Origin: Oikopleura dioica
Lineage: Eukaryota; Animalia; Chordata
Reading direction: 5' to 3'
DNA length: 64,000 bases
Assembly (NCBI GenBank): GCA_907165135.1
Contig: OU015568.1
Location: 14,705,208 to 14,769,207, forward strand
Part shown: positions 23,919 to 43,977 of the stretch, in pieces
How positions within the stretch are numbered: position 1 is the first letter of the stretch
Layout: the number at the start of each line of letters is the position of its first letter
Position numbers and translations under genes: made by a program
The notes under the pieces: generated by a model
Databases searched by the model: none
Seen by the model: only the letters and a program-made list of their open reading frames with translations
What the model was told of the DNA's origin: nothing

Positions 23919-24372
23919 TCAAAATAAATGACCTTCTTTTCAAAACTTGAAGTTCTGGGCTTTAAATAATTCTTCTGTTTTGACAAGTTTCCACAAAAAC
24001 GTGTTCGATGACACGATAAATTTCGAAGTCTGCGTTGATCAAAGTCGTGAAATCTCTGATTCAAGAAGTCTACGAATTAGAAATGATTTTCGTTCACTTT
24101 CCCCTGCGCGTCGTCTTCGCTTATTTGTCCGAGCGTTCCTCGCGCTACTATATTTTTCTTCGTCAGCGACGGCGATCCTGCCACGCAGATTATATTATTG
24201 CGCTGATTTAGAACTAGCTATCAACTTCTAGGTGGCGTAATACTCTTAAATACCTTATCAGATCCAGAACGAGCAATTATCACAGATCACATTTTTTCAA
24301 AAACCCCTTTTCTCGAAAAGTCGGAGACTACTTCAAGAACAAGAGGAGGAATAAAGAGATCAAAAGAGGAGA

Positions 24373-26249
24373 ATGAAAAAGTTCCCGCTTGTCGCTACTG
24401 TACTTGGGAAGGCATCTGCTATCTCAGGAAAAGGTTCACTATTCACTACGCAAAAATTGAGCTACGTGATTTGATTGAACCCGACAAAGGCGAGTATGCA
24501 GCGTCGAGTACTTACATTCAAAGATCGCCGACAACAATCTGCCCTGCTTTCTCACATGTTGAAAATGCCGAGTACAAATGCGACGACACAGAAGACAAAC
24601 TAGAGCACAACTCTGTTTGCACCTTGAGTTGCCTTGAAAACTACGAGAACTCAGTCGGTGAGGTCTCGCGGAAATGCAATTGCTTCACAACATTTGGCCC
24701 AATCGAATTTCCAAAGCAGTGTACTTGGGATGGCGAAGCTTTTGATGCGTGCACAATAAAGTCGGGCCTTACTGTTCCGATTTGCCCGACTTTGCCAGAC
24801 ATTGAAAATGGAAAGTGGGTCTGTGAACGGACTCGCGCTGACTCCCAAGACGGCGATGTTTGCTATAGCACCTGCAATGACGGTTACGCTTTGACGGAAA
24901 CCAATTTGCGTGCCATTCAATACGACTGCGACTGCCAGGGCGAGGATTGCCTTTGGAGTCAGCGAGGAGCAGTGCTAGAGCTCGCCCTTCGTCAGCGATC
25001 GGCATTCGTCCTCGGACGTCAGCCAGTCGGAATCGCTCCAAGATCGTTCACTCAGTCTTCCACCGGTTGGAGCACGAATATCTTCAGAGATGCTTCAGCG
25101 ATCTTCCCACAATGCGTCCCGATTCAAAGGGAAACATACAACGCGTTTGACAACACGGTTACTGAGTTCAATTTCTGTCCAGATCTGGTTCAACCTGAAA
25201 ATGGAAACTTCCTCTGCACTCAAGGAACCAGAGAGGACACAATTTGCAAATTGACCTGTTCTGAGGGATTTTTAGAGGCTGGATACGGCGATAAAAATGT
25301 AAGTTTTTTTGCAAAAGTAAATGAATCTGAGCGTTATTACTAATAACTTATTAGCGACTAAAATGCGGAGAAGTATCACGCGGAGTGTACCAATGGCGCA
25401 AGAACCCACTTGATTTTGTGTGCCTGGATCTTTCAGCGGATTTCGAAGAGCACCAAGCTGGCTACGACATTGGCACTTGTTCCGATCCAAGAGGCTCCGC
25501 TATCGACAGCTATCCAGGTTTTTTTACTTGCGACATGGCGATCACTGTTGATGGGGTAAGTATTTTCTTGAAAGAAGAAGTATGTGATCTCACATGTTTT
25601 CCCGGTTACAGGAAGGGTTCGATGAGTTGTTCTCTGACAGATTTTATTCGATAAGAAAGAATTAAAGAACCCGCAAAGATTAACAACTGGGCGTTCGGAG
25701 AAAGAGTGCTTCTGCCGAAAAGACAACTGCTTCTGGCGAAATGATGACAAAGTCAACTGCGAGCCTGACGAGGGAGTTTTACGCGCGTTCGGCGTTTACG
25801 ATACATGGGCGAATATAGGCGATCCTCGCCGTCAAATTGAGTTTGCTAGACAGGCACTTGGAGGAAAAGAACAAGAAATCACCCTTTACAGGTTTTTCTA
25901 CTGCCATTACCACACACTTCTAAAATGTTTTAAGGATGCGACAGAGTGAGTCTCTCATCACGGCTCGCTCGGGGAGACCTAACAGAAAGAACAAAGCAGG
26001 TACTGGATTACTACAAGCACGGAGCTTGAGTATGCCTGGCCGACCCCAAAAAGTGACGTCTTGCGATGCGATTGAACGATCCGCCGGGCTCGAAAGTGCC
26101 AACTGCACAGGACAAAACGCGGGCGCTAGTTGCCGTTTTAGGTGCAAAAGGGACTTAAACTCGATGGCGCTAGTTCCATCTATTGCTCTTGCAACAAAAG
26201 AGGGAACAAATGCAAGTGGTCGAGTCCTGTTCCGACCTGCGAGTCTTAA
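24373..26249 (+). CDS. Secreted sushi/CCP-repeat protein
   Basis: Repeated C-P-x-L/F..ENG.W/Y.C..C..GY/F..C..W..C modules (ICPAFSHVENAEYKC, ICPTLPDIENGKWVC, FCPDLVQPENGNFLC); ends KCKWSSPVPTCES*. Confidence 0.75.
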
Positions 26250-26399
26250 CTTTTTAAAGTATTTTATGCCGGTTAACTTCAACAAATGAGTTTTTAAATT
26301 TAAAAAAGGATAATATTCCCAGAAGATTGCAAATGGCCTGCCGTCAATGGACTTGATATTATCCCTTATTTAAATTTAACATAACCACAATTTTGAGCT

Positions 26400-27640
26400 T
26401 TTTTTTTATAAATATATCGCCCTGTATATAGGAATTCCATTGGAGACCAACGAAGAGGACAACTTGTGAAAATGTCCTGGAAAAAACAACGATTTGATAA
26501 AAATCGACTTCTATTTCTGTAAATATGACGAATTTGACTGTTTTAATTGACAAAATAAACGATTTATTACCATTTTAGTCACAGTTTTGCTGTCTCCCGA
26601 ATAAATTTAGCACCAAACGCAGTTTCAGAAAAACGTTTCGTTTCCTTAGCCTTTTCATGCATCGTCTGCGCCACTTCGCCGTTGATGATAACTGTCAAAT
26701 TCTCCAACGTGCCAAAAGCAGCGCCCATATCAAGATAGCAAGATGGAAAAACTAGCGCTAGTCCTCCATTGTCTCCGATTGCAGAGCTGCTTATCTGAAA
26801 GTAGTTTAGAATCGTCATGACTCACGAGCTTTAAAACGGCACCTTGTTGTTTGGAATAAGTTTTTGCAAAATCTTATCAACTGTATTTTCTGGCTCTTGC
26901 CTCAGAGCAGGAATATTTTGGATCTCATTGAGGTCGGCAGTGATGACGAAATCGGTCGAACTGGGAGGGACGTTGATGTAAGTTGGTGCGTTGCCAGCGA
27001 TGGATACTGATTGAACTCGAACTGTGGTCACTCCCGTTTTTCCACTAAGAGAATAACTTGAAAACTGCTTTATAAATTTTAGGTCTACCAGAACCAGGCT
27101 TGCTTAGCAATTGTGAAGCGCCTGAGAGCAGCAAGACGAAAGAAAACAAGAGCAGTAAAGCAAGTTCCAAAATAAAGATCCAAAATGCTTCGGTAGAAAG
27201 TGTAATTTTCATCTGTTTCGAATAAAGATCGTTTCTCGTCATCTTTAAATTAGGTAAAGATACGGAATTAATTCGTTTCAAAACCTGTCAGTGCATTAAA
27301 TTCTTGATTTTCTTGTTCGAGTCTGCTTAGATGTTTGAGTTGTTGAATTCTGACAGCAAATAGATAAAACAGGACAGCGAACATCAGCGGCTGAAGAAAT
27401 TGAAGTTTTGGGCGAATAATCGGCTCAGCTTCGAGTTGATCCGCCACCTTCTCAGGGGTCATTTTTGGGTTGGATTCGACGGCGCGTTCAAGCGTTCGGT
27501 CGATAGGAACGGCGGTCTTTTCGAATGGAAGGAAAGTTGAGGCCCAAATTGAAGAGTGGTGGCATTCCGCAAAATCAGTCTAAGAATATCGTAAATTTTA
27601 TTATTTTCAAATTTTCTAATTGAAAATATGATAATGGTCA
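26400..27640 (-). CDS. Unidentified multi-exon coding region(s) with hydrophobic segments
   Basis: Short ORFs separated by intron-sized gaps (FWIFILELALLLLFSFVLLL; SSAIGDNGGLALVFPSCYLDMG); no family recognised. Confidence 0.3.
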
Positions 27641-27976
27641 ATATGATATATTGACAATATCGAAATGATTATTTCTGATTATTAGGTTTAAAAATCGTTT
27701 ACCTTCGCAAGCTTCGAAGAAAATTGAACTGAACACGTTGAAATTCTTCGGTAAGAAAGAGTTACAATATCTCTCTGAAAAATCGCCCTAGAAAGCATTT
27801 TTACCCTTTTTTCTCGTTTTGATTCTACGAGAGCTCCTATTGGCTGCTTTCTCCGTTCCCAATTGCCAGAAAGATTCAGTCTATCAAAAGATCACAAATT
27901 TATTGATTTATTCATTATCAAAGTATCATAAAGGGAGACAATTTGAAACGCACAGTACAGTAAAATTACGTCCAGC

Positions 27977-29191
27977 CTATTCAAAGGTCTGGTAGAAGAA
28001 GTTTCGGACAGAGTATACAGAAGCTGGTTCATAGTAATCGTCAGAAATGAAAACTTTAAGATCGCTGTCAGTGAAAACATCGCTAGTGCTGTAGGATCCA
28101 GCAATGACTTCCTCGCCGTCGACTGTTACAGAATACTCGGTTACGGATGGATCTGATTCGCGCTGATTGACTTCGACAGAATACGTGTTCCACTCTCCGT
28201 CGGTGCAGGCGAACGTAGTAACATGTTCATGATGGCTCGTTGTTGGGTTGTCCACAGAGATGTAAATCCTGTTTTGGTTTGGTCGTCGCCAAAGTGCGAA
28301 TACTCGATTGCCAGATTGGCCGAGATCGCCACTGCCATTACCAACACGAAGAATGTTTCTCCACTGACCATCGGTAGAAAGGTCCTTATTGCAAAGAACA
28401 TCTGCAGATAATTTGTAGCTGATAGCAGGGGTGACAGTGGAAACCTGGTTATTTCTTGATGGGCGGACTGCACAGCTATCAACGAAAGTGTTACAATTCT
28501 CGAGTCCATCGCAAGGATCAGTGCCATCTGTGCAAGCGACTTCCGCAACTTCATCAAAAGTTTGGTAGTAGAAATTTCGAACGGCATAGGTTGAAGCTGA
28601 CTCGTAGAAATCATCTGAAGCCGAAACTTGAAGAGCGCCCTCGGACAAGGTGCCTGATTTATCGTAAGATCCTTCAAAGATCTCTTCATCATCAAAGGTG
28701 AGAACGTATTTGAGAATTGATGGGTTTGCTTCGACTTGGCGAACTTCAACAGAATAGGTGTTCCATTCACCCTGAATGCACTCGGCAGTAGTTACTCGCT
28801 CCTTGTGACTCGTTGTAGGATCGTTGACGGAGATGTAAAGCCTGTTTTGATTCGGTCTTCGCCAGATAGCGAATACTCGATCTCCGATTTGGCCGAGATC
28901 GCCACCACCACCGATGCGGAGAACATTTTTCCATCGACCATCGAGAGGCATGGCATGATCACAGTAAACTTCAGCGGAAGCTTTGAAATTCAAAGCGGCT
29001 TCAACTGTTGCTAACTGCTGATTTCGTGCAGGGAAGACTTCGCATTCATTGACAAAAGTCTCGCAATTGGCTTTACCATCGCATGGACTAGGGCAGGTAA
29101 GGTCTTGGTAGTAGAAATTTCGGACAGAGTAAGGAGTAGCAGCGCCGTACCACTCGTCAGCAACGAAAGCTTGAAGATTTCCTTCACTCAG
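27977..29191 (-). CDS. Protein of tandem ~150-170 aa LamG/ConA-like repeats with Cys-rich linkers; 5' part lost in gap
   Basis: Two full units and part of a third: PC..C.TFV..C...P.RN.Q..TV, W.N.LR.G.G.GDLGQ.G.RVFA.WRRPNQNR.YISV, V..SDD.YE.AS.Y.VRNF.YQTF. Confidence 0.7.
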   Translation of the reverse strand: MSEGNLQAFVADEWYGAATPYSVRNFYYQDLTCPSPCDGKANCETFVNECEVFPARNQQLATVEAALNFKASAEVYCDHAMPLDGRWKNVLRIGGGGDLGQIGDRVFAIWRRPNQNRLYISVNDPTTSHKERVTTAECIQGEWNTYSVEVRQVEANPSILKYVLTFDDEEIFEGSYDKSGTLSEGALQVSASDDFYESASTYAVRNFYYQTFDEVAEVACTDGTDPCDGLENCNTFVDSCAVRPSRNNQVSTVTPAISYKLSADVLCNKDLSTDGQWRNILRVGNGSGDLGQSGNRVFALWRRPNQNRIYISVDNPTTSHHEHVTTFACTDGEWNTYSVEVNQRESDPSVTEYSVTVDGEEVIAGSYSTSDVFTDSDLKVFISDDYYEPASVYSVRNFFYQTFE

Positions 29192-29691
29192 NNNNNNNNN
29201 NNNNNNNNNNNNNNNNNNNNNNNNNNNNNNNNNNNNNNNNNNNNNNNNNNNNNNNNNNNNNNNNNNNNNNNNNNNNNNNNNNNNNNNNNNNNNNNNNNNN
29301 NNNNNNNNNNNNNNNNNNNNNNNNNNNNNNNNNNNNNNNNNNNNNNNNNNNNNNNNNNNNNNNNNNNNNNNNNNNNNNNNNNNNNNNNNNNNNNNNNNNN
29401 NNNNNNNNNNNNNNNNNNNNNNNNNNNNNNNNNNNNNNNNNNNNNNNNNNNNNNNNNNNNNNNNNNNNNNNNNNNNNNNNNNNNNNNNNNNNNNNNNNNN
29501 NNNNNNNNNNNNNNNNNNNNNNNNNNNNNNNNNNNNNNNNNNNNNNNNNNNNNNNNNNNNNNNNNNNNNNNNNNNNNNNNNNNNNNNNNNNNNNNNNNNN
29601 NNNNNNNNNNNNNNNNNNNNNNNNNNNNNNNNNNNNNNNNNNNNNNNNNNNNNNNNNNNNNNNNNNNNNNNNNNNNNNNNNNNNNNNNNNN
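29192..29691. other. Assembly gap (500 N)
   Basis: Run of N. Confidence 1.
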
Positions 29692-29838: not shown

Positions 29839-31860
29839 ATGGAGATATCTACTCATCCAAAAGAACTCAGCGAAGAGAACGTTGAAAAATGGCTCGAAGA
29901 TTTCTTGCCGAAAATCAAGAGAGAAACAACGAGGAATGATAAGGATCGTCTACTTTTATCAGTCAACGAGATCGATTTCAGAACACAGAAGCATAAAGAA
30001 ATAAAAGATAAGGGAGGCAACTGGACGCATGTTTCTTTCAAGGACAAGTATGCATACATCTTCTACTTAGATAGATATGAAGAGGAAAAAAAGGAAAAAT
30101 TTATCCAAACACAGTTTCAGCGAGATATTATCATTTCAAATCGGGATCTTAGAAGAGTGAAAATCGCACGATCTGAGCTGAACGACGAACGAGGAGCATG
30201 GTTTTTGGAAAAATCGATATCAAAAGACCTGATTTCTTTTGGTGGGGAAGCGATCGTATTGAGCCAAAAAATCGGGGATCTACCAGTTGCGGTTAGAATT
30301 CAGGCAATATATTATGAAAAGATTAATTGATTAAATCTGATTTCAGGTCTATGATCCCGCATTGTTTTGCAATCAACGGTCTTTTTTTCAAAAAATATAC
30401 TATTCTAAAGGTAAATTTCTTGAAAAAAAAAAGAATTTATATATGAGTCAAGATTATCAAATTGCCGAGCATTTGAACCATGAAAAACTAATTCCCTTTC
30501 ATGAAAATGTCATCAAAAACTTTGTGAATATTGAGCTCTACGACGAATCATTTTCATCTTGTCTTGGCTCAATCACAATTATGGAGAAGGGTGATCAATG
30601 TTTGAGACCTTTGCTAAAAGAAAACTCATTGTCGCTAGAAGAGCGAAAAATCATTTCGATCGGAGTTAAAAAAGGGGCCGAATATCTTGCAAAAATTGGC
30701 ATTTATCACCGTGATCTGAAGCCCGAAAACATTATCCTGATAAAAGGGGTAGCTAAAATAATTGATTTTGGTGTTAGTGAAGAGCGATCTGGGCGGTCAA
30801 GTTTCCGAGAAATGGGCTATTCACGAGTTGGACTGAGAATAAGAAGTAGAAAAAACTTCTGTAAGCTTCCAATAAGACTATTCTAACTAAGTTTAATTTA
30901 GATTCTGGATCACCTGGATTTTGTACCTCGGAGCAACTTTTATCTGATTATGATTATGGTTACTTCGATGGTGAGAAAACCTTGATTACACTTATTCTAT
31001 GCGAATGGAAAACAGCTTGGACTTTATTGTATCAACCTATTGAAAGCGATGAAAGTTTGAAGATGTTCAGATCAAGCGATACATACATATTACTAAACGA
31101 CCCCAAGGAAGAAGAAATAATGAAATTAACTGCTATAATTAAAGTTACAGAAGCATCCGGCTATCTTTGCTTGAATGACGGAAACTTGACAAAATCGATT
31201 AATGTGCACTATCTGAAAAATTCCCTCACGAAAACGATGAAAGCAGGTTTTCGGAACTTGACGAAAAATGTTATGAAGCAGAAGGAATCAAATTTATGTG
31301 TGCCAATTGCGGTCACAAGTCTTATTCGATGGGCAATACAAAATGATGTTAAGGACGACCTCTCGCAATATCGTTTGGAAAGGTTGTCATTTGACAAAAT
31401 ATTTGTCATTTTGACAATGGTTCTTTACCCTCGAAGTTTGGCCGGACTAAACTTGAATCCGAATCTGAATGAAACTGATTATCAAAAGAATGAAATTGAA
31501 TTGCTTCTCAAAAGAGTTCAGTATCCAACATTTCTTTCAGATAGCGGATGGGATATTATATCACCGCCATTGTTTTCATGGAAATTTGGGTACAAAAAAA
31601 TTCTTCTTCATGAAAATGGTAGTATGTGGTAATTCGTCGGGGTCGCCCCGACAAATGAAAGATGAAATAACAGTCATTCGTCGGGGTCGATCCCGACACA
31701 TTGAAGATCAAAAATACACCAATTCGTCGGGGTCGAACAATTGAAATACGACGAATATGAGTATTTCTAAGCAGTGATTCGCCGGGTTTTATTTTAAAAA
31801 TCATTGAAAAAGGTCGAAGAGTCCTAGCGCCCTACTATTTGGCAGGAACTTATAGAATCT
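29839..31860 (+). CDS. Divergent protein kinase with an extra C-terminal domain, multi-exon
   Basis: FGGEAIV, PVAVRIQ, YHRDLKPENI, KIIDFG, GSPGFCTSEQ; followed by KQKESNLCVPIAV domain; 3' end uncertain. Confidence 0.7.
31632..31756. repeat. Three ~45-bp units starting ATTCGTCGGGGTCG, with hairpins, inside a kinase intron
   Basis: Units at 31632, 31676, 31722; GTCGGGG-TCG-CCCCGAC stem; outer ends ATTCGTCG..CGACGAAT inverted. Confidence 0.8.
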
Positions 31861-31872
31861 AAGTATCCCTTA

Positions 31873-32022
31873 CCTGGGGGCTCCGCCCCCTAGGTCCTAA
31901 AATGCCGGGGTCTAGTCTAGGGTTACTTAGGGTTACCTTCAGTAACCCTAACTAACCCTAGCCTATCCCCCTCGGGCGAGTTTGTTCTGTCATTTTGCCC
32001 AGTGCCCCCTAACCCTAACCTA
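31873..32022. repeat. Telomere-motif hairpin element
   Basis: GGGGGCTCCGCCCCC hairpin; CTAGGGTTACTTAGGGTTAC (31917-31936) / loop CTTCA / GTAACCCTAACTAACCCTAG (31942-31961); CCCTAACCCTAACC. Confidence 0.7.
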
Positions 32023-32932
32023 AAATTATAGAAAGTACTTTTAGCTAAAATCAGTCTTACTTTGGCAGCAGTAAAGAATATATAACATACCCCCCCCCCA
32101 AGTTTTCGCGCATTCCTCGGTACATTTTCCGTAATTTACTCTTCCTGATTTGTTCAAAACCCCCCAAATTTACGCCGCTTAACTTTTCCGCGCGCCCCGA
32201 AAATTTCTTCTCCTAACTTTTCTGCGTGCGCCCAAATTTACTCTCGCGGCGCTGATTCGCCTCATCGATTAATTTTCTGAGTGCGCAAAAGTCTTGTTTA
32301 GCTCGCTCCGGGCAATGAAAGGATTATCTTTTATAAAAAGCCAGATGCCTTAATAGGTCAGCCCTATTTTATGTTATTTTTGATAAAATTATTGTTTATT
32401 ATTTCAATGAAGTTAATAAATATTTGATAGAACGTTTTTCTAGTGCGAAAGATGAAAACGACATCTGTGGAGCAAAATCCTGACCTCAATATTTTAAGTT
32501 ACTCGAATGGTACGATTTTTATGTGTCCAAGCCACGAAAAAGTTCCAATTCTAGCGCCTCAAGTACCTGAAAACCAACTGTATTCGACTGCTTTTCTGTT
32601 AATACAACTTTGAAAACATGCACTAATAAATAAGTATTACTAGAAATAATGATATTCTGTCATAACTTAGTATTTGTTTGTTGATTGCAATTAACTGAAA
32701 GGAAAATTTTATTAAACAATGATTAAACATACAATGTCGCATTACTTTGAGGAAGTTTATCCATCATATTTACGTATGATTATCTCTTCCGGCTATTTTT
32801 GAACCGGTTGAGGCACACACGGGTGGCGCCCGAGCGCTCCGTCCCCGTCGGGCAATATCTTGCTCTTCAAATTTCGCTATAATTTTTAATAATTTATGAC
32901 TATTTATTTTTAAATTATGGCCTTTGTATTTA

Positions 32933-35900
32933 ATGGCAAGAAACCGGACAAAAAAAACCGGTAAAGAAAAGAAGCCGAGAAAGAAAAGAGGGCCCTACGG
33001 AAGTTCGTCGACTTTGAAAGAGAGAGCGGATGCATTGAAAATCATCGTCGCAAGAAAGGATGCAGGAGAATCGTAAGTTGTTAGATTTTTTAATATTTTC
33101 TTTAATCTTGCACTATTTTTACTAATGAAAGATTATCATAAAATGAAACTAAAGTCGTAATCGTAAGTTACAAATACCTGCCCAATGCCCTTTTAAACAA
33201 TCATCAAAAAATCACAAAAATTCCATCAAGGAAATTAATGGTGATGAGTCGACACCCTTAAATGCCTTCTTCAAAATAATCTTTATCGGTTTTTAACAAA
33301 ATTTATTAACAAAGTTTATAATGGAAACAGTTTCATAATCGATCTTTATATACGGCTTTCCTCGGCGCATGCTTTCCAAATCCGATTCTACAACTTCAAG
33401 GCGTTCTGATTAAGAATTGCGCGAATTTGTTTGATCCTCTGAGGCCGTAATGGTGGGCGCTTACGTGGACGAGTGGTGCTTGAAGGTTGTGTCGGAGGGG
33501 CCCCAGGGATCAAGATCGCCGTTAGAGAAGATCGTGTTCGAAGTAGCTTCCAGGTTGTCGGCCCAGTATTTGATTCTAAACCGATGTTAGGGACGAATAG
33601 TAAAGAAAACAAATATCCGCCGTTTCTATTGCGTGAAAATACACGACTCGCGGATTCTTTTAAAATTTCAAACTTTTACACTTTAGCTCAACATTGCGGA
33701 ATAGCTTCTTTGGATCATAGTCAAGCTCGTCCGCTGGTGGAAGGCTTGTTTTGCTTTTTATACAAGCTCGAAAATAAACAGGGAAAAGATTGTTTCTTTT
33801 AAAACTCTTTCCTGTCAGTTTTGTAGATTGGAAGAAGAGAGCTTAAGGAGGTGCTTTGTTAGAATTTCGTTAAGCTTTTACCAAAGGGGGAGGACTTACG
33901 GCTTATCTTCAAGTTCTTCTTCGAGCCCCTGCTCAAGAATTTGGCGCGGATTAGGTAACGATGATTTGGACTGGGGAATGAAGACTTTGTTTTTCAGGAA
34001 ATCTTGGAATCGCTCAGCGTATAAGCCAGGCCGCACCACTAGAATTGACGTTTTTTGAATTGATTTTTTTTATGAAAAGAAGACCTGAAATCCCGTCGCC
34101 ATTTGTGTAAAGATTTTTGATGAAATATTCCGTTTTCTTGAGAATTTTGTGGCACTGGAGGATGTCGATAATTCCACAATAAATATGAACTTGTGTGCCG
34201 TCGGGAAGTAGTGCAGGCAAGCCCTAGTTCTGGTCGACTTTGTGCTGAGAGAGTTGAAGATTCACTTGCGAGTCAGTGAAGACCTGCTCCATTGGCGACG
34301 AGTATAAGGCAGAGCGCTATAACGAAAATGAGGATGGGTCAATAAGAATGCTCAAATAAGTCCTCCGACTAATAAGGAACCCGGATTTCAAAGCCAAGGC
34401 ATGAAAAAGATTGAAATTCATAGATTAAATACAATCGGGGTTCTGATGGGCTGGAGGCTTTTTTTGAGCATTTTTATTCGTCCAAAAAGAACTGTCTGAA
34501 CGAAGTTTTAGGAAGATAGACTTACTTTGTGAAAGGATTTCTTGTTTCGTTTTCTTTTGACCAGAGAGCTCTTGCCTGAGTTGCCTCTGGAATTACTCGC
34601 GCTCAAGCTCATCGACTCCATACTAGCAATCTCCGTTGTAGAAGTTCTTGAGGATAATTTAGTTTCTCGCCTCGATTAATTGGTTTACCTTAATAGCAGC
34701 TCCAGAAGCAGTTTCGAGCTGGATGTCATTTGTTCCATTGGAAAGTGATTTCTCGTTGATGATGATTTCCATGTCTTCAGAGTCGGTCAACAGCGTCAAG
34801 TCTCATCCAAAAGTTATTAGTGTTGAAAATCTAATGGAGGATAGAGTGAATGTTTATCGGAAGAATTGATCCTACCTTGAACTTGGAGACAGATTTGAAT
34901 TTGTCAACGTGCTCTTTTGGGACTTGGGCGATTTCCAAAAGTCTTCGTAGTCAATCAAGGTACCTCGCTAAAGATTTTCATGCAGTGCTTGTTGTCTGGG
35001 TTGACATGTGGGCGAGGATGTTCATGTCGACGGTTGCGCCAAGATTGTCGATGCTGGAAAGGAAGATTTAAAAGTGACGATTAGTCCTGAGACTTAAACC
35101 AAATTCGCTTATTATTACTTTGCCCTGCTTTATGAGCTCTTCAATCAAACCAGAGTCGTAAAGGGCCATGTAGATGTCACCGTGGGTACCATCCTTGAGG
35201 TTGTAGAGATCCTTGGTGGGGACGGGGAGAAGGGTTTCTTTGTTGATTCGTTGGAAGCTGGTTGAACATTTTGATGTCGACCTGGCAGTTGTTGTTCTTT
35301 CGGAGGATCTTTCGGGTGTCTTCTTCGGTGTTGAAGGAGTTCATCAAAACCAAGGGGACGTTGGTCTCGTAGGTCTTGTTCAAGTGCTCGATTTGCTGAA
35401 CAGTCAAGTCCAAAAAGTTCAATCCAGATCTGACGGAAATGATCGACTTGGGACAAGTGAAGCCCGTGGAAGTACCGCGACCACCATTGAGCTTGATGAC
35501 GACCACTTTCGTTTTTCCAACGATCAGAGCCTTAAAATTACGTTAAGATATGTCCAGATTGGCAATGACCTTGGTATACACAAAGACAAAGTACGATATT
35601 GGTATGATCACAAGGACAAGACATACGCGAGCCTCGAAGTGCATGGAACTGAAGACAATCGACAAGTTTATAACGCTGGAAGAATTGATTTCGAGAAGTA
35701 GTAGCCTAATAACAATTCTCTAATTAATTCTTATAACTTTAGAACCATCCATTTCTCTCTTGCTGACAAAGAGGATGACATCATCGAAGAAGCTGAACTC
35801 ACGAACATTTCCCGCAGAGCCTTAGATGCTGACAATGGAAAAGTTTTACGTCCATTAGACTGTTTCAGAGCTAGAGTAAACAACCATGCAATTCAATATG

Positions 35901-38900
35901 GAAAAACCTGTCCTGAGGAGTACAAAAACAACAGTCGAACATATTCAAGTACTTATTTAGTTGGTAATAAGTGACCTACCTTTTAAATATTAACCAAAAT
36001 TAAGGCAATACCGGAAAAAACCGAAGAGGAAGTACTGTTTCATTAGTCAAACGACTTGGCTTTGGGATGGAAAAACAAACGGAGCAAAAGAAACCAATCG
36101 AATTTTCTAAACTTGCCGGTCATACAGCTGAACTTGTCGATAAAATTAATAATCGTAACCCGTCAGGAACGGCTTCATTTACTCTTATTGTAATGTTAAA
36201 AATACAAAATGAAACCTTTAAAAGATGTTATGAATATAGACGAGAAGAAAGTAGAGCTACAACGTGCACATTCCAAAGGATGGGGCTCCAAGAAGGTGAA
36301 TTGGAATAGAAAGCAGCTCGGAAACAAGCGTATCGGAGCGACGAGCCTTACTGCGATTGCTGCTGATGGTTCAAGAAGATGGTCAACAGGAAATTTTATA
36401 AATATTAATCTTAAAGATAAACCTTTTTAGTAGCTTCGGCAGTTCTAGTTTTCTCCAACCAGTCGTTGAATTCTTTTTTGTCGTCTTCAGCTTTTTGCAT
36501 CGCTCTCTCCGAGTAGTTGTTGATTTTGATCAGATTTTCCTTCTTCTCGGCTGCTTTTAACGACTTTTTCCATTCATACCGGATCATCTAAAATTTTTCT
36601 TTTATAAAATTTATAAAAAATATCAAGTAATCGTGGCGAATATCCCGAAGGAGCTCACTAAAGTCGCCAAAAAACAGCTGATCTACAAGACGGAGAATTT
36701 TTCATATTATTATATGAATATCGTTACGATGACGTGTGATGGCCCGAAGGATCTACATCTATACACAAGTAGCAAGGCTTCGATGACCAATGTGATTTGG
36801 ACGCACATGATCACGAGATGGAATGCTGAACTGGTGGAAGATAATCAGCACATTTTACTTTTATTGGGTTCTTTATCTTATTAAAAAAATAATGAATTAT
36901 TAAAACTATTTAAGACAACGCGTCCCAGCACGGCTTCTTGAAAGGAATGGACGCTGAGCATTCCAACATCGAAATGGCCTTTCTGCTGGCTAATTCCACT
37001 GATCTCTGTCAGGTAATTTTTCCGAAGATGAGTGGTAAGAGATTGAGTGAGCTTTGGTACTGACGTGAATGGAGCTAAATCTAAATGACAAATTGCCTAA
37101 TTTATGAAATGAACAATTTTCTAACTCGAAATTCAAAACTTCAATTTTAATTAATGGCTTCGAAAAATAGAAATTGGAAAAACCGGAGCTGAGATAAAAT
37201 GAGACTAAAACTGGAGCCAGCCGAAGGTACTGTATTCGAAGATAGGCCGGAAAAAAGGAAAATAGGTTTTGGAAAACAACAAGACGGATATTCATAAAGA
37301 GACGAGTAAATCTGTAAATGTTTGGTTATTTTTGTATGTATTAATTGTATCGTTCCTTTTTCAGCGATCGTGAGTTAGGCTTTATGGGGAATAATGAAGA
37401 TAGTGATGGGTTCAATAAATGTCTTAATTTGTCGATAAACAAGATTCAAGCGCACAAAGGAACAAAGGATTTTGTACAAAAATGCAAAGAGAGTAAGCTT
37501 TTAGTTGATAAAAGTTGCAAACAAATTGAAATTGAAAATTGGTAAAATAAGAAAAAGAATCTTCGCTTGAAAATGGAGCTGAATTCGAAGGTTTCCGAAG
37601 AATGGTCGTGCGGGCGGAGCAGCGGGTGGTCATCTCGAGCTTTTTTGAGAACGAGAGTGTTAACTTGTTGCAGCTTCGAGGATCTGGCAGTCGGAGCAGA
37701 CGAACTTCGGGTCGTCGCGGACGTCTTTCGGGTTAACGTTGAGGCAGAACATGTGGTACCATTTTGCGCAGCGCTCGAAATAGACCCGCTCGAATTTGTT
37801 GCCGTCTGGACGCTTGCATTGGCCTAAAAATGCGTGAAAACACAAAAACTTTATCCATCTTACCAGCAACGCAAGGTCCATCATCGTCAACATCCTCGTC
37901 GTCGTCCTCGTTTTCACTCGTTTCTTGTTGAAATTGAGTCCGAGCTCCTTTGTTTTTCTTCCGCGGATTCTGCGAGCGTCGTGGGAGATCGGAATCCTTA
38001 TCGCGTCGTTTACGATTCGGCGCCTTGTTTTAGAGATAAGAACATTTCAAATTTTCAAAAAAAAAACGCTTACGTCGCAGCTCATGGTGTAAGTTCCAGA
38101 AGTAGCATTTGGGAAAAGGAAGGAGTTGAACTAGAACTGAATCGCTGCAGCATCTGACTGGCCAGAAGAGCCGAACTGGAAGTCAACGATTGCATTGGGG
38201 CAGACGTTGAGGACTTCGAGGGTCGAACTTTTTCGCCTTCAATAGTGTTCAATTAAACCATATTTCATAGAAACTTACGATTATGACTAGGAAGTTGAGG
38301 GCGTAAAATGCATCCAGCAAATAGTCCAGCTAGGAATTCACTTGTACATCAATTGATGCTACCATGCTTGAGAACCTCTTTCAGGAACATTATCTAACCA
38401 AAGTTGTTCGTTGAATGATGAGATTTGGAGACTTACTAAATATTGAAAGTTGTTTTGCGATCTGAGGTCGAGCTTTTCAACGAGATTTTTACAAAGCCTC
38501 ACGTGGTCCACGATGACAAGGCAAATTTCAAAATGCGAACATAAGATTATTGGGAAGGGATTCGAATTGTGGAAGAGCAACAATACTTCTGCCACGGAAG
38601 CAACTGAACCTGGAAGTGTCTCGATCTAAAAGTAGTTTTCTGTAAATCCATGGTTGACGATGTGATTCAGTAAAACGTAGAAAGCAGGTTGAAATTCTGC
38701 TCCCTCATCGAAGCATCGTTTGAGGCATTCTTTTCTGAGAAAAAATGTTGAGGGTCTCGAATTTATCTTGAAAGTACCTAATTGATTGAGAACTAGAGAA
38801 GTCGCAGGATATAAAGGAAGCTTTTTTGAAGAATGAATGTGTAAGAGCAATGAATGGCATTCCAAACGCCGAGTATGTTCAGTTTCCGGAAAGAGTTATG

Positions 38901-41300
38901 TAATGATCAGGCCCGTTTTTCAACTTGAGGATGAGAATGAGATCGTCGACGGGATTCACGAACTTGTCTCCTTGCTTCACACCGAAGTTGAACTTTGAGA
39001 CGACTTCTTTATTGATGTTGAGATCGAATCCTATTGTATAAATTGAGGCATCTCCACTATCTGGCTGTAAGATTACCTGAAAATAACTTCAAATCATGGA
39101 TTTTCATTGCAATTTACCTTATTTGGATCGATCCACAAGCCGATGTTTGAATTAAAAGCTTCGTAGATGTCCTTGTCCGGCGAGAACACTTTCGAATCGA
39201 TGATCTGAAACTGCGCCAGCGTCTTTCCCGTATTCTGCGATCGCTCGTTCCAAAAATTTCAGCTTTCCAAAGTCGATTGCTTTGCTTGAAACAGCCTTTG
39301 CGGAATAAGCTCAATCTCGTGCTTGTCTAGCCAACTGGTAACTTCTTTGTACACGGAGTAGTAGATTTCTTTGTTGATCCTCTCGGTTCGGGCGATGAAA
39401 CTGGCAAGGATTGGTTTGTGGTCAGAAATGGTTATTGAAGGATGTGAAGAATAAGACAGACATTCTACGGATTGTTGTCATTGGCACATATTGATCGCTG
39501 GTTTCTGGGAAATCATCTTGAGTAGTTGAGCTCTCGAATTTTCTTCGTTGATTTTTTCTTTCTAAATAAATTTAAGCCGGCGGATCAGGGATATCACGCA
39601 ACTCTCGGCAAGTTGATGCGATCATGGGTGACAGAGCAGTACGCGAAAAATGATGAACCACCGAATCGAGCTGACGCAGTCCTCAAAGTCAATGAAGCGG
39701 TCTACTGTATTCACCCAGATTGCATCATTGGTTCTTATGCAAGAAGGAAAGTTAATTTTGCATTCAAAAGAATGTGAGAGCTATAACTTTTAGAAACAGT
39801 ACCTAGTGCATTTCTCCTGATCAGTTTTCTTTCGAAAGTTCTTTGTAAGAGCCGGCAGAGTTTGAACGCATATTCTTCTTGATACAGGCAGCACTCGTTC
39901 AATTTGATCCTAAAAATGAAATTAAAAGTAATAAAAAGTGAAATTAATGATAAAAGCGGACTTCTTCACGCTGATCTCGTCAACGAGGAGAAAAACCACG
40001 TCAATCGAGAACTTCCAAAGGCCCCAGAAGAAGAAAAGGCGCGAAAAAAACGAAGAGAAGGAAAAGAATCACTCTACAAGCTCTACAGCAAAGAAGTTTT
40101 GCAAGACTTTCTTTATAAGGACCCGATTATCGAAAGCGATCGCTTTTCTTATAAAACGCGAATAGAACTGAAGGTAATTAATTTGAGAGATATTTTCTGA
40201 TTTTAACTTTTTTTAGGAACCCGACATTGAATTGGAAGAGAGAGTGAAGAAGATTATTCAACTGAAAAACGCAGCAAAAGCTCGAAAATGCGCCGAAACG
40301 AAGAAAAAGAGGAAAATGGAAAGAAGTCAAACCAAGAAAAACCCGATCCCCGATGAGCCTGAAAAAGCACCAGAGGAGAAGGAAGAAGAAGTCGAATCCG
40401 AAGCCGAGGAACCAGAAAGAAAGATCCCAAGGGAGGAGCCACGGAACCGATATGTCCTGGGTCAATTGCTCACTCCAGCGGATTTCGAGAGCATCAGAGG
40501 CAATCGATGGTTTTTCAGCACAGCAGTCGACGCTTTTTTACCGTGTTCTTGAGCATGAACATCCTGAAATTGCGGCAATATCCGTGAATGTATCTGTAAG
40601 TCTATAAAATTTTTTAAAGAATAACTATTTTCTAAGATTTCTTTGGCCAGTCAATCACCGGAAATGGCGAAGAATTTTTTCAGTGGAAGATTGTTCGAGA
40701 CAAAGGAAAGAATCCTGATTCCAATCCATCAATCGTAAGTTAAATAAATATCTATTTTTATGCACTAATGGACTTCTTCCTAATTAAATTTCATTCTAGT
40801 GATCCTATTGGTCATTATTCTCTACTTCAACTCGATCTTGCTCTACAGGAATGTACCTACTTTGATAGCCTTGCAAATCTCTATGGAACTTCTCAAGAAA
40901 AATCCGATGCTAAAAAAAAGAAAAAAGAAATTTTGGACTTGCTTCTACCTTTCATTGGACAACGATTTGACGAACAATTTGCCCGTGGATTCATCAAAAA
41001 CACATTTCTGGACAAGAACATTGCGAGCCCGTCAACTGGAAAATGGCGATCGAAATGCGCAGAGCTACCGACAATGCAATTGGATGGACACTCCTGTGGT
41101 CCGTGGATTTGTCACTTTGCGGATTGTCTAGGAAAGCGATTTATAATTTACCTTGATTTCTTGTCGAATTCTTTTTTGATGAAAGCAGCAATGTTCTTTC
41201 GTTCCCGGAAAGTGCGTTTTTGGCCTTCGAGAGCTTGCTGAGAGTACTGATCCGTGAAGGTGTAGAAGCTGGATGTGTGGAACTCGCGGAAGATGAACGT
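32933..41300 (+). CDS. Intron-rich pogo (DDE_1) transposase fused to Ulp1/C48 SUMO-protease domain; near intact
   Basis: Exons 32933-33072, 35548-35697, 35743-35948, 36005-36166, 36225-36389, 36628-36867, 36915-37012, 39577-39746, 39957-40173, 40217-40589, 40637-40733, 40800-~41130 join in frame (one T-run slip near 40540): KRGPY..GES|YVQIGNDLGIHKDKVRYW (HTH), NIDEK, TSLTAIAADGS, KASMT..ILLLL|DNASQH, FLLANSTDLCQ|PADQG, SYAR|SGLL, PIHQS|DPIGHYSLL, FDSL, QLDGHSCG. Confidence 0.8.
33340..33760 (-). pseudogene. DPP7: Captured 3' fragment of DPP7/PRCP (peptidase S28)
   Basis: YWADNLEATSNTIFSNGDLDPW and SAHHYGLRGSN match S28 SNIIFSNG.LDPW..AHHLDLR; stops and frameshifts; DPP7 vs PRCP not resolved. 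Confidence 0.75.
33896..34625 (-). pseudogene. PIP5K1: Captured 3' fragment of type I PIP 5-kinase
   Basis: RSALYSSPME, GLPALLPDGTQVHIYCGIIDILQCHKILKKTE, then exon VRPGLYAERFQDFL (cf. LYIGIIDILQSY..HRPGFYAERF); internal TAG stop; introns retained. Confidence 0.85.
34625..35525 (-). pseudogene. UGP2: Captured central fragment of UDP-glucose pyrophosphorylase
   Basis: [47 protein letters not shown]..HGDIY (frameshift), IDNLGATVD, LEIAQVPKEHVDKFKSVSKFK, FNTNN, QLETASGAAIK; introns retained. Confidence 0.93.
36423..36587 (-). pseudogene. Orphan 165-nt antisense exon inside transposase intron 5
   Basis: TTTTAG|..|GTTTAT splice sites on minus strand; open 55-codon frame MIRYEWKKSLKAAEKKENLIKINNYSERAMQKAEDDKKEFNDWLEKTRTAEATKK. 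Confidence 0.5.
37640..38240 (-). pseudogene. Fragment ending in a PHD finger (resembles the KDM5 C-terminal PHD type)
   Basis: NKAPNRKRRDK..EDDDEDVDDDGPCVA|GQCKRPDGNKFERVYFERCAKWYHMFCLNV..FVCSDC; one Cys ligand replaced by F. Confidence 0.65.
38280..39480 (-). pseudogene. OCRL: Captured 3' half of OCRL/INPP5B (5-phosphatase end, ASH, RhoGAP-like)
   Basis: YSSHPSITISDHKP, LILILKLKNGPDHYITLSGN*TYSAFG, IETLPGSVASVAEVLLLF, LAGLFAGCILRP; stops and frameshifts; introns retained. Confidence 0.88.
39803..39909 (-). pseudogene. Orphan 107-nt antisense exon inside transposase intron 8
   Basis: TTTTAG|GATCAAATT..GCACTAG|GTACTG on minus strand; two open frames; unidentified. Confidence 0.35.
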
Positions 41301-41733
41301 CTTTTTTTTACAAATTTGCCGTCTAGATCTTTCAGTCAGATTAGACTTACTAAGCCAGTCTTTAATTGATTCAAAAATGAGCAGTTCTTGCTTTTATACC
41401 TCGCTGAATTGATAGCCCCGTTTTCTCGGAGATAGCGAGTGATGTTGTGCGAAGTCGCGTTTTGGGAGCTCTTCTTCAAGTGAATAAAGGGATTTGACAG
41501 GAAAAAGCTTAGAATGTTGATGTCATGCCACTAAAAAGGGTAAACAGACTAATAGATTAAGAGAAATGGCTGGAATATTTTTAGACAGTTGTTTGAGTTT
41601 TCAGAATATCACGCGGAAACATTCCTACAGAAAGACAAATCAATAACGAGCGAAATAAATATAGTGGTCGATGATTAACGGAGAATATCTATTGCGAGAC
41701 AAAGGTGCGGCAGAACGAGTCGTAAATAAAATA

Positions 41734-42121
41734 GGTGGTGGTCTAAACTTTGAAGTTCGTATGTGCGATAAGAACTTCGGGTGGCCTAAACTTTGATCGT
41801 TCCCATGTGTGGCTCTTTGAGAAAGTGGCCTAAACTTTGAATTTCCCCGGAGGCGCTTCTGCCATCGGTGACTAGAGCTCTGCCTGCTAAGGCCACTACG
41901 CTTTAATCAGACCAATTAGGTTTACGGTTTTCATTCAGGGTGATGACACATGGAACTAGTCAGAGCGCCTCAGGGGAAATTCAAAGTTTAGACCACTTTC
42001 ACACATGGAAAGAATCAAAGATTAGGCCACTTTCTCATAGAATCACACATGGGAAGAATCAAAGTTTAGGCCACACAAAGTTCTTATCGCACGTAAGAAC
42101 TTCAAAGTTTAGACCACCACC
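41734..42121. mobile_element. 388-bp MITE nested in the large element
   Basis: TA|GGTGGTGGTCTAAACTTTGAAGTTC .. GAACTTCAAAGTTTAGACCACCACC|TA; subterminal GTGG(T/C)CTAAACTTTGA repeats on both arms. Confidence 0.88.
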
Positions 42122-42169
42122 TATTTTAGTACAAGCAGCAGTGTTTTAAACAAGACTGAGTTTACATGA

Positions 42170-42735
42170 AGTATCCGGCATTTTTGTATAAATGATTGCT
42201 GAAGATGTGAAGAGCATTGCCCCATTCCTTATCCTCTGCAATCTTCCGCGTTTCGAGGGAATTCTCGCGCTTTGGAAACGAGTTTCGCCAGTTGTTTGCT
42301 TTTCGATGTTGCCACTCGACATGGGCGGGATGTCGATAGAAGACGGAGTAGTTTTTGCTCTTCAAAAGATTTGGGACGCAGAACCACCTCGCTCTATAAA
42401 CCAAAAGTAAAAGAAGACAAACGGAAATTTTAACTTACTGTTGCGGGTGGCGTAGAGGTACTTGAAGATCGAAGCACGTCAATATTGATCGCATTCATCT
42501 TGCGCGAAATATTCTCGACTGACATTGAACGCTTCGCGACTGGGAGAACGTCTCGCCGTGTGTTCAAGTTTCTACGAAGGATTAACAATGAAGGAATTGC
42601 AAAAATTGTCATTACTTTTTGGCGAATCTTTTGGGACGCTGATATTTCCGGGAATAGCTTGGTAAGCTCCAGACGCAGTGGACAATGCGCTCATCCATCG
42701 ACGTTGCTTCTCGTAGCTTTCCGCTGCAAGCAGGA
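42170..42735 (-). pseudogene. Captured fragment with a PH-domain-like C-terminal helix and Ser-rich region
   Basis: VLLAAESYEKQRRWMSALSTASG fits the PH terminal helix pattern (AES..E...W..AL); gene not identified. Confidence 0.45.
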
Positions 42736-43110
42736 CATTGTCAATGATTTTATACATTCGTAGTCGATAAATTCCATAGTTTAATTGTTAGATTAGCGGG
42801 ACATGAAGCTATCAATTAATTATTTAGCAAATGATCCTAGTTGGCGATTTTTACCGAGTTATTTTCCCGTGGAATCAAATGCGCAGTCTTGAACGGTGTC
42901 TGTTTGTCCTTTTAGCGTCCTCTCAAATTCGCCACTTTTAAATTCCTAAATCTAGATCGCTTTAAAATGGAGTAAAAGAGAGAAGTCGTTACTTGATTTG
43001 CGAGTCTTCGAAAGCAGTGACGAGTAGACTGAATTGAGGATGGAAAATGGTTCTGCTGAACAAGGTAGAATTCGTGGTGCGGCTGTCTGTATTCTTTTGT
43101 CGGCACAATA
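42735..43110 (-). pseudogene. PAFAH1B1: Captured fragment of LIS1 WD40 repeats
   Basis: RTIFHPQFSLLVTAFEDSQIK | [30 protein letters not shown] | ASCPANLTIKLW vs LIS1 [55 protein letters not shown]. Confidence 0.88.
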
Positions 43111-43977
43111 AAGTGAAGTGGAATCTGCTCTCTGTTCGTGTCCATTATTTCCTGAAACGGTTAATTGTTAAAAGGATAGTAAGCATCTGTTCACTTTTTT
43201 TGATTAATGAACAGAGTATTCTTTTAAAATCGCTAATTAGCTTCCAAAAGGATCTCTCCAGCCGACAGCACAGAGATATGCCAGAGTGGAGAAAAACGAT
43301 TGAAGAAAGGGTAAGAATCAATAATATTTACGCTATTCTGAATAACTTATTCAATTTCTTTTAAAGATTCTCAAATACTGCCGTTGATTTACCTGCTAAG
43401 AAAACTCGCGATTTTATGTCGATTCACGCCGCAAACTCGATGTACAGCTATTGATGACGTCATTACTCCACCACCATAAACCACTGAAAATCATAAATTT
43501 TACTGTCATTCTTATCGCTTCAATAAAACAGACAATATTTAAAAATTAAAAAATAACAATGTTTAAAAAGGTAAAGGTGTATCAAAGGTCAGTGTCAGAA
43601 TATATTCCAAAATGTAATTTCTCTAACTAAGTTCTGGACTTAAACTTCTACAATTGATCTTCCTCTGGAAAAAAAAAGACTGAAATCCCTTGGCTTAATT
43701 TGGCGCTATGATTGGATAACGCGCCCGTTAATGAATCATTAGCGTTGACGCGCATTTCAGCGGCGCGCGAGTAAATTTTGGCGCACGCGGAAAAGTTAGG
43801 AAAGAAATTTGGAAACGCGGGGAACGCGAGGAAGCGTAAATTTTGGGTGTTTTAGAAAAGTTAGGAAACGGAAACTTGGGCGAAATACCACGAATTGCGC
43901 GGAAATTTAGGGGGGGGGTATGTTAGTTAATAAAAATTTCGATATTTTTCGAAAAGGGATTTTCTGAAAATCATTAC

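Follow-up and report, generated by a model that had tools for sequence, protein, structure and literature searches.

The question raised by positions 33073-35547 of the stretch analyzed here is how decayed pieces of several host genes came to be strung together at one site, within what reads as an intron of a transposase-like gene. The stretch, which we call the window, comprises 64,000 nucleotides (nt) of Oikopleura dioica DNA (GenBank assembly GCA_907165135.1, contig OU015568.1, here C1; the window is C1:14705208-14769207, and positions given without a contig name are window positions), and C3 and C4 are other contigs of the same assembly. The original prediction, made from the letters alone, saw in this interval a chimera of three genes, UGP2, PIP5K1, and DPP7, that fills intron 1 of the transposase gene. 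What the locus holds is a chain of pieces from unlinked host loci inside a mobile element, and this pogo-like transposon produced a near-identical second copy after the capture. The explanation that we prefer, to which we assign a probability of roughly 0.65, is that a chain from several donors was captured through break repair in intron 1 of a mobile pogo-like element.

Translation, Pfam searches, and blastn against the species' own genome resolve the 2475 nt of the block into at least five decayed pieces of host DNA, and the gene pieces with a readable direction lie on the minus strand. Pfam recognizes UDPGP (E 1.5e-38 at 35180-35542, with three further exon pieces at E 5e-7 to 8.5e-5), PIP5K (E 4e-6 at 34017-34223), and, weakly on the fragment itself, Peptidase_S28 (E 0.021 at 33464-33586), each on the minus strand. 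A blastn search of the genome with the whole 2475 nt returns one further full-length copy (100% identity) and five partial matches at other loci; for the five donor pieces the E-values run from 3e-29 to 0, which is far beyond chance. The boundaries below were set by sensitive realignment to the parents, and the percentages are identities to the parental locus.

33073-33327, strand unassigned: 255 bp with no assigned donor, present in the genome only in the two copies of the element
33328-33407, minus strand: F1, 80 bp of an exon of an mTERF-like gene (C1:11776013-11776092, 96%)
33428-33613, minus strand: F2, truncated last exon of an S28 (DPP7/PRCP-type) peptidase gene (C1:1935046-1935250, 78%), with a 19-bp deletion
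33619-33875, strand unassigned: F3, 257 bp of an unnamed single-copy locus (C1:3716923-3717182, 90%)
33888-34634, minus strand: F4, the 3' exons of a PIP5K gene with introns, up to just beyond the stop codon (C4:14176970-14177721, 90%)
34636-35505, minus strand: F5, mid-section with introns of a UDP-glucose pyrophosphorylase (UGP) gene (C1:15126809-15127792, 86-88%)
35506-35547, strand unassigned: 42 bp that match no donor in this genome and close with the acceptor TTAAG; the UGP homology stops within a UGP exon at about 35505

The three named genes are all there on the minus strand, as originally claimed, but the count of donors has to be raised from three to at least five, with an mTERF-like gene and the unnamed locus added. 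In the case of the DPP7 portion, the S28 piece is present but covers only 186 bp, and it adjoins 257 bp that come from a different locus. The abrupt join of UGP to PIP5K is likewise real and falls directly after the NFYN codons, though it lies at 34634/34636 and not at about 34625. F4 spans positions 201-270 of the PIP5K profile and F5 spans positions 52-318 of the UDPGP profile, and F3 has no Pfam family match and no recognizable coding content or domain. The 255 bp at 33073-33327 may be left over from the original intron, or may derive from a donor that has since been lost. No terminal inverted repeats belonging to the block itself were found in a check for a nested transposon. No open reading frame (ORF) fuses the pieces, and the "chimera" therefore exists at the level of DNA only.

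The UGP, PIP5K, and S28 parents are full-length genes: the UGP parent spans positions 33-413 of the UDPGP profile, the PIP5K parent spans positions 7-270 of its profile, and exons of the S28 parent match Peptidase_S28 at E 5.3e-29 and 8.3e-11. The parent of F1 is an exon beside a 411-residue ORF with a weak mTERF match (E 0.0013). The five parents are unlinked, lying at 14.177 Mb on C4 and at 1.9, 3.7, 11.8, and 15.1 Mb on C1, and within 1.5 kb of each one neither sequence from another donor nor an end of the element was detected. The alignments between pieces and parents continue through parental introns, and the breaks fall within exons; F5, for example, stops after the NFYN codons at one end and in the middle of the exon that encodes the glycine-rich loop at the other. 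F5 has lost 114 bp in seven deletions (17, 10, 66, 4, 8, 4, and 5 bp), has gained no insertion, and carries several frameshifts, and F4 has small indels, so that the pieces are pseudogenic. The 66-bp loss in F5 removed exon sequence along with an intron, and in no piece has an intron been precisely removed. There is no poly(A) tract in the block, and the combination of parental intron loss and poly(A) by which a retrocopy is recognized is not seen. Because the introns are retained and poly(A) is lacking, the templates were genomic DNA or, less likely, unspliced RNA, and the description of the block as a DNA-level chimera of host gene pieces is supported.

The joins and the ages of the pieces were two points on which the original prediction had proposed checks. 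Microhomology was not seen at the joins, where no stretch of three or more bases is shared, with the caveat that about 9% later divergence blurs the fine detail. Instead, the joins are blunt and hold 1-20 bases of filler that matches neither parent (20 bases between F1 and F2, 5 between F2 and F3, about 12 between F3 and F4, and 1 between F4 and F5). These joins fit end joining or template switching with minimal homology, without discriminating between the two. Dating by divergence could be carried out, and the Kimura two-parameter (K2P) distances to the parents, with standard errors (SE), are 0.039 (SE 0.023) for F1, 0.156 (SE 0.032) for F2, 0.088 (SE 0.020) for F3, 0.093 (SE 0.012) for F4, and 0.092 (SE 0.011) for F5. 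F3, F4, and F5 are indistinguishable at 0.088-0.093, and F1 is lower and F2 higher, each by about two standard errors. Equal age is the pattern expected from one multi-template episode, in which F3 to F5 probably entered together, with F1 and F2 perhaps added on separate occasions. For the block as a whole, both serial capture, the first option of the original prediction, and a single multi-template event are compatible with these distances. For cargo outside the block, the distances to the parents run from 0.029±0.007 to 0.090, and this spread indicates that the element as a whole collected cargo at different times.

The block is enclosed by a transposon whose outer features are the following.

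32083-32084, strand not applicable: left TA target-site duplication
32085-43923, plus strand: carrier element, 11.8 kb, with inverted ends
43924-43925, strand not applicable: right TA target-site duplication

All four family copies examined read ACATACCCC...GGGGTATGT and are bordered by TA on both sides, and the inverted ends extend over about 173 bp at 76% identity. A TA target duplication is a hallmark of the Tc1/mariner/pogo superfamily. From the TA-flanked ends it follows that the element proper is 32085-43923 with a TA target duplication. Only two copies of the full element are present in the assembly, together with many derivatives of 0.7-0.8 kb in the genome that keep only the left 0.5 kb and the right 0.25 kb (85-93% identity). 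The second copy lies about 770 kb away (window 32081-43926 against C1:15504364-15516210 on the minus strand) and is 99.92% identical, the sole differences being nine one-base indels; its mosaic is identical to that of the window copy and its right flank is different. Since the two copies are near-identical, the movement was very recent. The mosaic and its mobile carrier are thus solid observations. Directly to the left of the element lies a repeat of 420 bp (31665-32084), which shares 99% identity with two copies on C4 (2.19 and 2.21 Mb) and stops exactly at the element start. When other copies of this adjoining repeat were examined for an empty target site, they too ended at TATATA and varied beyond that point, so that the support that this side lends to the TA duplication is weak.

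Short-read contigs from a separate run (X1) cover the stretch with almost no differences, and single contigs bridge 32613-33357 and 35327-36488; the outer joins of the block, being bridged in this way, are not artefacts of the long-read assembly. One X1 contig (depth 36.8, against 102.5 for the full form) skips 179 bases at 34338-34516, the site of an inverted repeat with 43-nt arms that comes from the PIP5K parent, and copies or haplotypes are probably polymorphic for this deletion. At 37271, in cargo derived from a PHD gene, a short-read contig has a three-base insertion (GAA) relative to the window.

The gene that surrounds the block is laid out on the plus strand as follows.

32919-33072, plus strand: exon 1, basic N-terminus and putative helix 1, with an open frame up to the GTAAGT donor
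33073-35547, plus strand: putative intron 1, 2475 nt, GTAAGT donor and TTAAG acceptor, phase kept
35548-35697, plus strand: exon 2, putative helix 2, turn, and helix 3, with a frame that continues exon 1 and a GT donor at 35698
36225-37012, plus strand: exons with the first two Asp motifs, NIDE and LLLL|DNASQH, the latter split by a 45-nt intron (36869-36913)
39577-39774, plus strand: exon with the third Asp motif, CQ|PADQG, after a cargo-filled intron (37013-39576, 2564 nt)

The motifs NIDE, LLLL|DNASQH, and CQ|PADQG thus occur in order, with frames open between plausible splice sites. Exon 1 is ATG-initiated whether the run at 32950 is read with 8 A, as in the window (ATG at 32934), or with 7 A, as in the second copy and the X1 contig (ATG at 32919). 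The 8 A in the window copy is probably a long-read error. In all transposase searches the exons were scored one at a time. The pogo-like profile used combines two ORFs of this type from the same genome with two relatives from the database. A word search with the genome's own pogo-like ORF brought up no more than two relatives, and a strong profile would need more. Against 311 translated segments this profile ranks the three Asp-motif exons as the top three, in colinear order, each of them weak (E 0.09-0.6), and hhalign places consecutive exons at consecutive profile positions (P 0.051 and 0.00089, combined P about 5e-4). In other pogo-like genes of this genome an intron lies within one or two codons of the position of the 2564-nt intron (QPA|D versus Q|PAD). 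Taken together, it is quite probable that the gene is a diverged pogo-type transposase, and it may still be intact. Another pogo-like gene, at L022:2977-3200 (C3, about 206.5 kb), also has an enlarged intron at the position of the third Asp, which holds a long open frame of unknown origin.

That the block lies in intron 1 of this gene, as was originally proposed, is suggested by the logic of the sequence: 33073-35547 is a GT...AG interval, and its removal joins ...GE + S + YVQIGNDLG... in frame and restores a pogo-like reading frame. Very short introns are expected in O. dioica, and those of this gene (41-70 nt) end in TTTAG, TTAAG, AAAAG, and TTAAG, which the TTAAG acceptor of intron 1 resembles. 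We infer that the interval would be removed from the transcript by splicing. The further claim that the block splits a helix-turn-helix was overstated, since the break would fall within a three-helix DNA-binding domain but outside the helix-turn-helix motif proper. Exon 2 has weak homeodomain-like matches in the PDB (residues 3-24, E 0.3-1.2), a PDB search with exon 1 found nothing, and neither exon has a Pfam match; hhalign against the profile gives P 0.34. This suggests that helix 2, the turn, and the putative recognition helix 3 all lie in exon 2, with helix 1 in exon 1, so that the break would separate helix 1 from helix 2.

Cargo is found at four sites in the element: in intron 1, in part of the 198-nt interval that follows the exon of the first Asp motif, in the 2.5-kb intron that precedes the third one, and in the 3' arm. 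The 2.5-kb intron contains PHD-finger and OCRL-like pieces, the 3' arm contains PH-domain and LIS1-like pieces as well as a nested miniature inverted-repeat transposable element (MITE) of 403 bp, and four further parents were mapped for cargo outside the block. No exon is interrupted by cargo. Every piece with a readable gene direction (8/8; the direction of F3 is unreadable) is antisense to the transposase-like gene, for which the two-sided binomial P is about 0.008 if the pieces are independent. The palindromic MITE (41726-42128, inverted arms of 114 bp) has dozens of copies on all large contigs at 85-99% identity and splits a captured piece of the PH-domain gene, the parent of which is uninterrupted at that point. 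Within the 198-nt interval, between two transposase exons, 36414-36587 on the minus strand is an ATG-initiated antisense ORF of 58 residues that matches neither a Pfam family nor any other part of the genome, possibly another captured piece with a lost donor. Also inside the element, 3' of the third-Asp exon and on the same strand, 40744-41238 encodes a Ulp1/SENP-type cysteine protease domain (Peptidase_C48, E 9.9e-6); the Pfam searches of the 3'-arm pieces were uninformative.

The sequence of events that we favor would begin with a double-strand break in the element, the repair of which would copy stretches from several ectopic templates, either by abortive gap repair or by replication-based template switching; repair-associated template switching is the favored mechanism of capture. 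The captured chain would come to lie in the first intron of the transposase gene and would be spliced out at GTAAGT...TTAAG, so that the gene would stay readable; the pieces themselves have since accumulated substitutions, deletions, and frameshifts. If the element is to remain mobile, only insertions in introns or beyond the coding region would persist, and among these only the backward-facing ones, which add no sense splice or poly(A) signals; we propose that all cargo is non-coding and antisense because only such insertions survived. Two selective filters, one against exon insertions that disable the element and one against sense pieces that add splice or poly(A) signals, explain the pattern of the cargo simply, and a directional, transcript-templated mechanism is an alternative for the uniform orientation. 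A bolder view, in which a pogo-type transposon that is still autonomous would treat its introns as a cargo bay and make intronic antisense RNA against UGP, PIP5K, S28, and other host genes, strikes us as quite improbable.

Several results weigh against the favored reading, and most of them concern the transposase. No single exon among ten plus-strand pieces shows a transposase domain in Pfam, and a genome scan with PF03184 (DDE_1) finds eight loci, all of them elsewhere and none in the element. In tblastn comparisons of all translated segments of the element with five PF03184 loci, nothing falls below E 0.003. A word search with a 107-residue exon piece found no relative, and a whole-library search with the first-Asp exon gave two matches, both of them spurious bacterial repeat proteins (SprB and a beta-propeller). 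The best GT donor of the first-Asp exon (exon 5), at 36430, is out of frame with the next acceptor at 36627; exons 5 and 6 can be joined in frame only through a GA-AG intron (36416 to 36650 or 36653) or through a weak donor, and the gene may be broken there. Three oligo-dT RNA runs, which carry only the species label and possibly derive from another O. dioica lineage, place 0-1 reads on 32081-38080, too few to bear on splicing, and the RNA contig runs contain none of the sampled words of the stretch. As to the other parts of the reading, the left flank of the second copy is a 500-N scaffold gap, which leaves only its right flank known, and the junctions bear no positive signature of any single repair pathway.

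Several of these points would be accommodated if the carrier were dead, that is, if it were a non-autonomous Pack-type element with a transposase gene wrecked by insertions, moved by an enzyme from elsewhere, so that the GT...AG interval and the restored frame are relics of a disused exon-intron structure and the block is junk in a pseudogene. Such a reading draws on the lack of Pfam or database support for an intact transposase, on the phase conflict of exons 5 and 6 at their best GT-AG sites, on the near-absence of RNA reads, and on the presence of only two copies in the genome. It has more difficulty with an assembly that holds no other copy of the gene to supply the enzyme, with the near-identity of the two copies that implies very recent movement, with exons that all remain in open frame and retain the three catalytic motifs although the cargo has diverged by 3-16% from its parents, and with the avoidance of exons by all cargo. 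The phase conflict also has an in-frame GA-AG solution, and GA-AG introns are frequent in O. dioica (PMC7072748), for which reason the conflict at 36430 does not prove the gene broken. We regard a dead carrier as unlikely, while giving it real weight.

The remaining explanations concern how the mosaic arose, and for each the pieces themselves supply most of the evidence. If unspliced nascent host transcripts had been copied by reverse transcription or by RNA-templated break repair with template jumps, then the shared orientation of all eight readable pieces, their head-to-tail joining, and the fact that the identifiable parents are all transcribed genes would be accounted for. The introns have been kept, however, with none precisely removed and with the 66-bp loss in UGP taking exon sequence; no poly(A) tract is present, F3 has no recognizable coding content, and selection against sense-oriented signals accounts for the orientation equally well, all of which makes this route decidedly improbable. 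The capture of one multi-gene locus that was then shrunk by deletions, which the original prediction had offered together with the proposal that the parental loci might prove to be neighbors, finds some encouragement in the equal divergence of F3 to F5, but one parent is on C4 and the other four are scattered over C1 between 1.9 and 15.1 Mb, and neither other donors nor element ends occur within 1.5 kb of any parent; for this assembly it is refuted. Finally, a chimeric long-read contig might be suspected, since the assembly is Nanopore-based (PMC8008620) and scaffold gaps lie near both copies. An artefact is nevertheless scarcely credible when separate short-read contigs cover the whole stretch with almost no differences, including single contigs across the two outer joins, and when the identical mosaic appears in two copies with different right-hand contexts.

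Outside the element, 24000-29192 is a 5.2-kb segment to the left of a 500-N scaffold gap (29192-29691), and it has a 94%-identical copy on the opposite strand at C1:13931139-13936326.

Capture of a multi-donor chain by a pogo-like element, our preferred reading, can be compared with several known systems. Animal Pack-TIRs, of which 370 have been catalogued, mostly single-copy, are proposed to have originated by gap filling or by fork stalling and template switching, and some later moved as multicopy elements (PMC8277862). The present element resembles them in having inverted ends and host sequence copied from a parent elsewhere, but they carry mostly one short insert, whereas here at least five donors are chained, more occur elsewhere in the element, and a transposase-like gene appears to be kept; the cataloguing study, Tan et al. 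2021 (PMC8277862), does not mention pogo, Tc1, or Oikopleura. In the case of the plant Pack-MULE, Pack-CACTA, and Pack-Mariner elements (PMC8903248, PMC6379663), host fragments, often from several genes, likewise lie between inverted ends, and the element carries them along as it moves and multiplies. A Pack-TYPE element is defined as non-autonomous, with no transposase coding sequence (PMC8903248). The element described here is an animal one, and the cargo has not taken the place of its transposase-like gene but occupies the introns and 3' part of that gene. It shares with Pack-type elements the terminal inverted repeats, here with a TA duplication, host cargo with parents elsewhere, and the carriage of that cargo in a second copy, and it departs from them in what reads as a pogo-like gene whose exon frames are open and which carries all three catalytic motifs. 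The C. elegans element Turmoil-1 (PMC2572040) is also an animal DNA transposon with pieces of protein-coding host genes, but it holds two coding pieces within its terminal repeats and no multi-donor intron chain.

Among pogo/Tigger elements, the TA duplication, the inverted ends, an N-terminal helix-turn-helix region (putative here), three acidic motifs in the typical order and wording, and short deletion derivatives all have counterparts in this element, which differs in being too diverged for Pfam DDE_1 on single exons, in having many introns, in its C-terminal Ulp1-type protease domain, and in its 11.8 kb, mostly cargo. Templated-insertion chains of cancer genomes offer a further comparison: there, too, several segments of a few hundred bases, copied from distant loci, are joined at a single site, and microhomology is slight or absent. 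Those chains are somatic, whereas the one described here is in the germline, is old (3-16% diverged), and lies on a mobile element. The case works like Pack-type capture and is unusual in its five-donor chain, its uniformly antisense and intronic cargo, and its setting in an extremely compact host genome.

For plants, there is ample documentation that cut-and-paste transposons take up gene fragments; animal examples are sparse and mostly limited to single inserts. It is uncommon to find at least five unlinked donors joined in one of the most compact animal genomes, in an element that has moved recently, and equally so for the enzyme gene to be apparently kept with all cargo confined to introns and the 3' part. 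For annotation, the matches to UGP, PIP5K, and S28 at the block should be treated as pseudogenic cargo and not as genes. Were the cargo-bay view to prove true, expression of the transposon would be coupled to host gene regulation or to small-RNA defense, and the uniform orientation would reflect function or directional capture and not only purifying selection. The locus offers a natural system for asking how templated multi-donor insertions form in the germline, and whether placement in introns and backward orientation allow a transposon to carry cargo without loss of autonomy.

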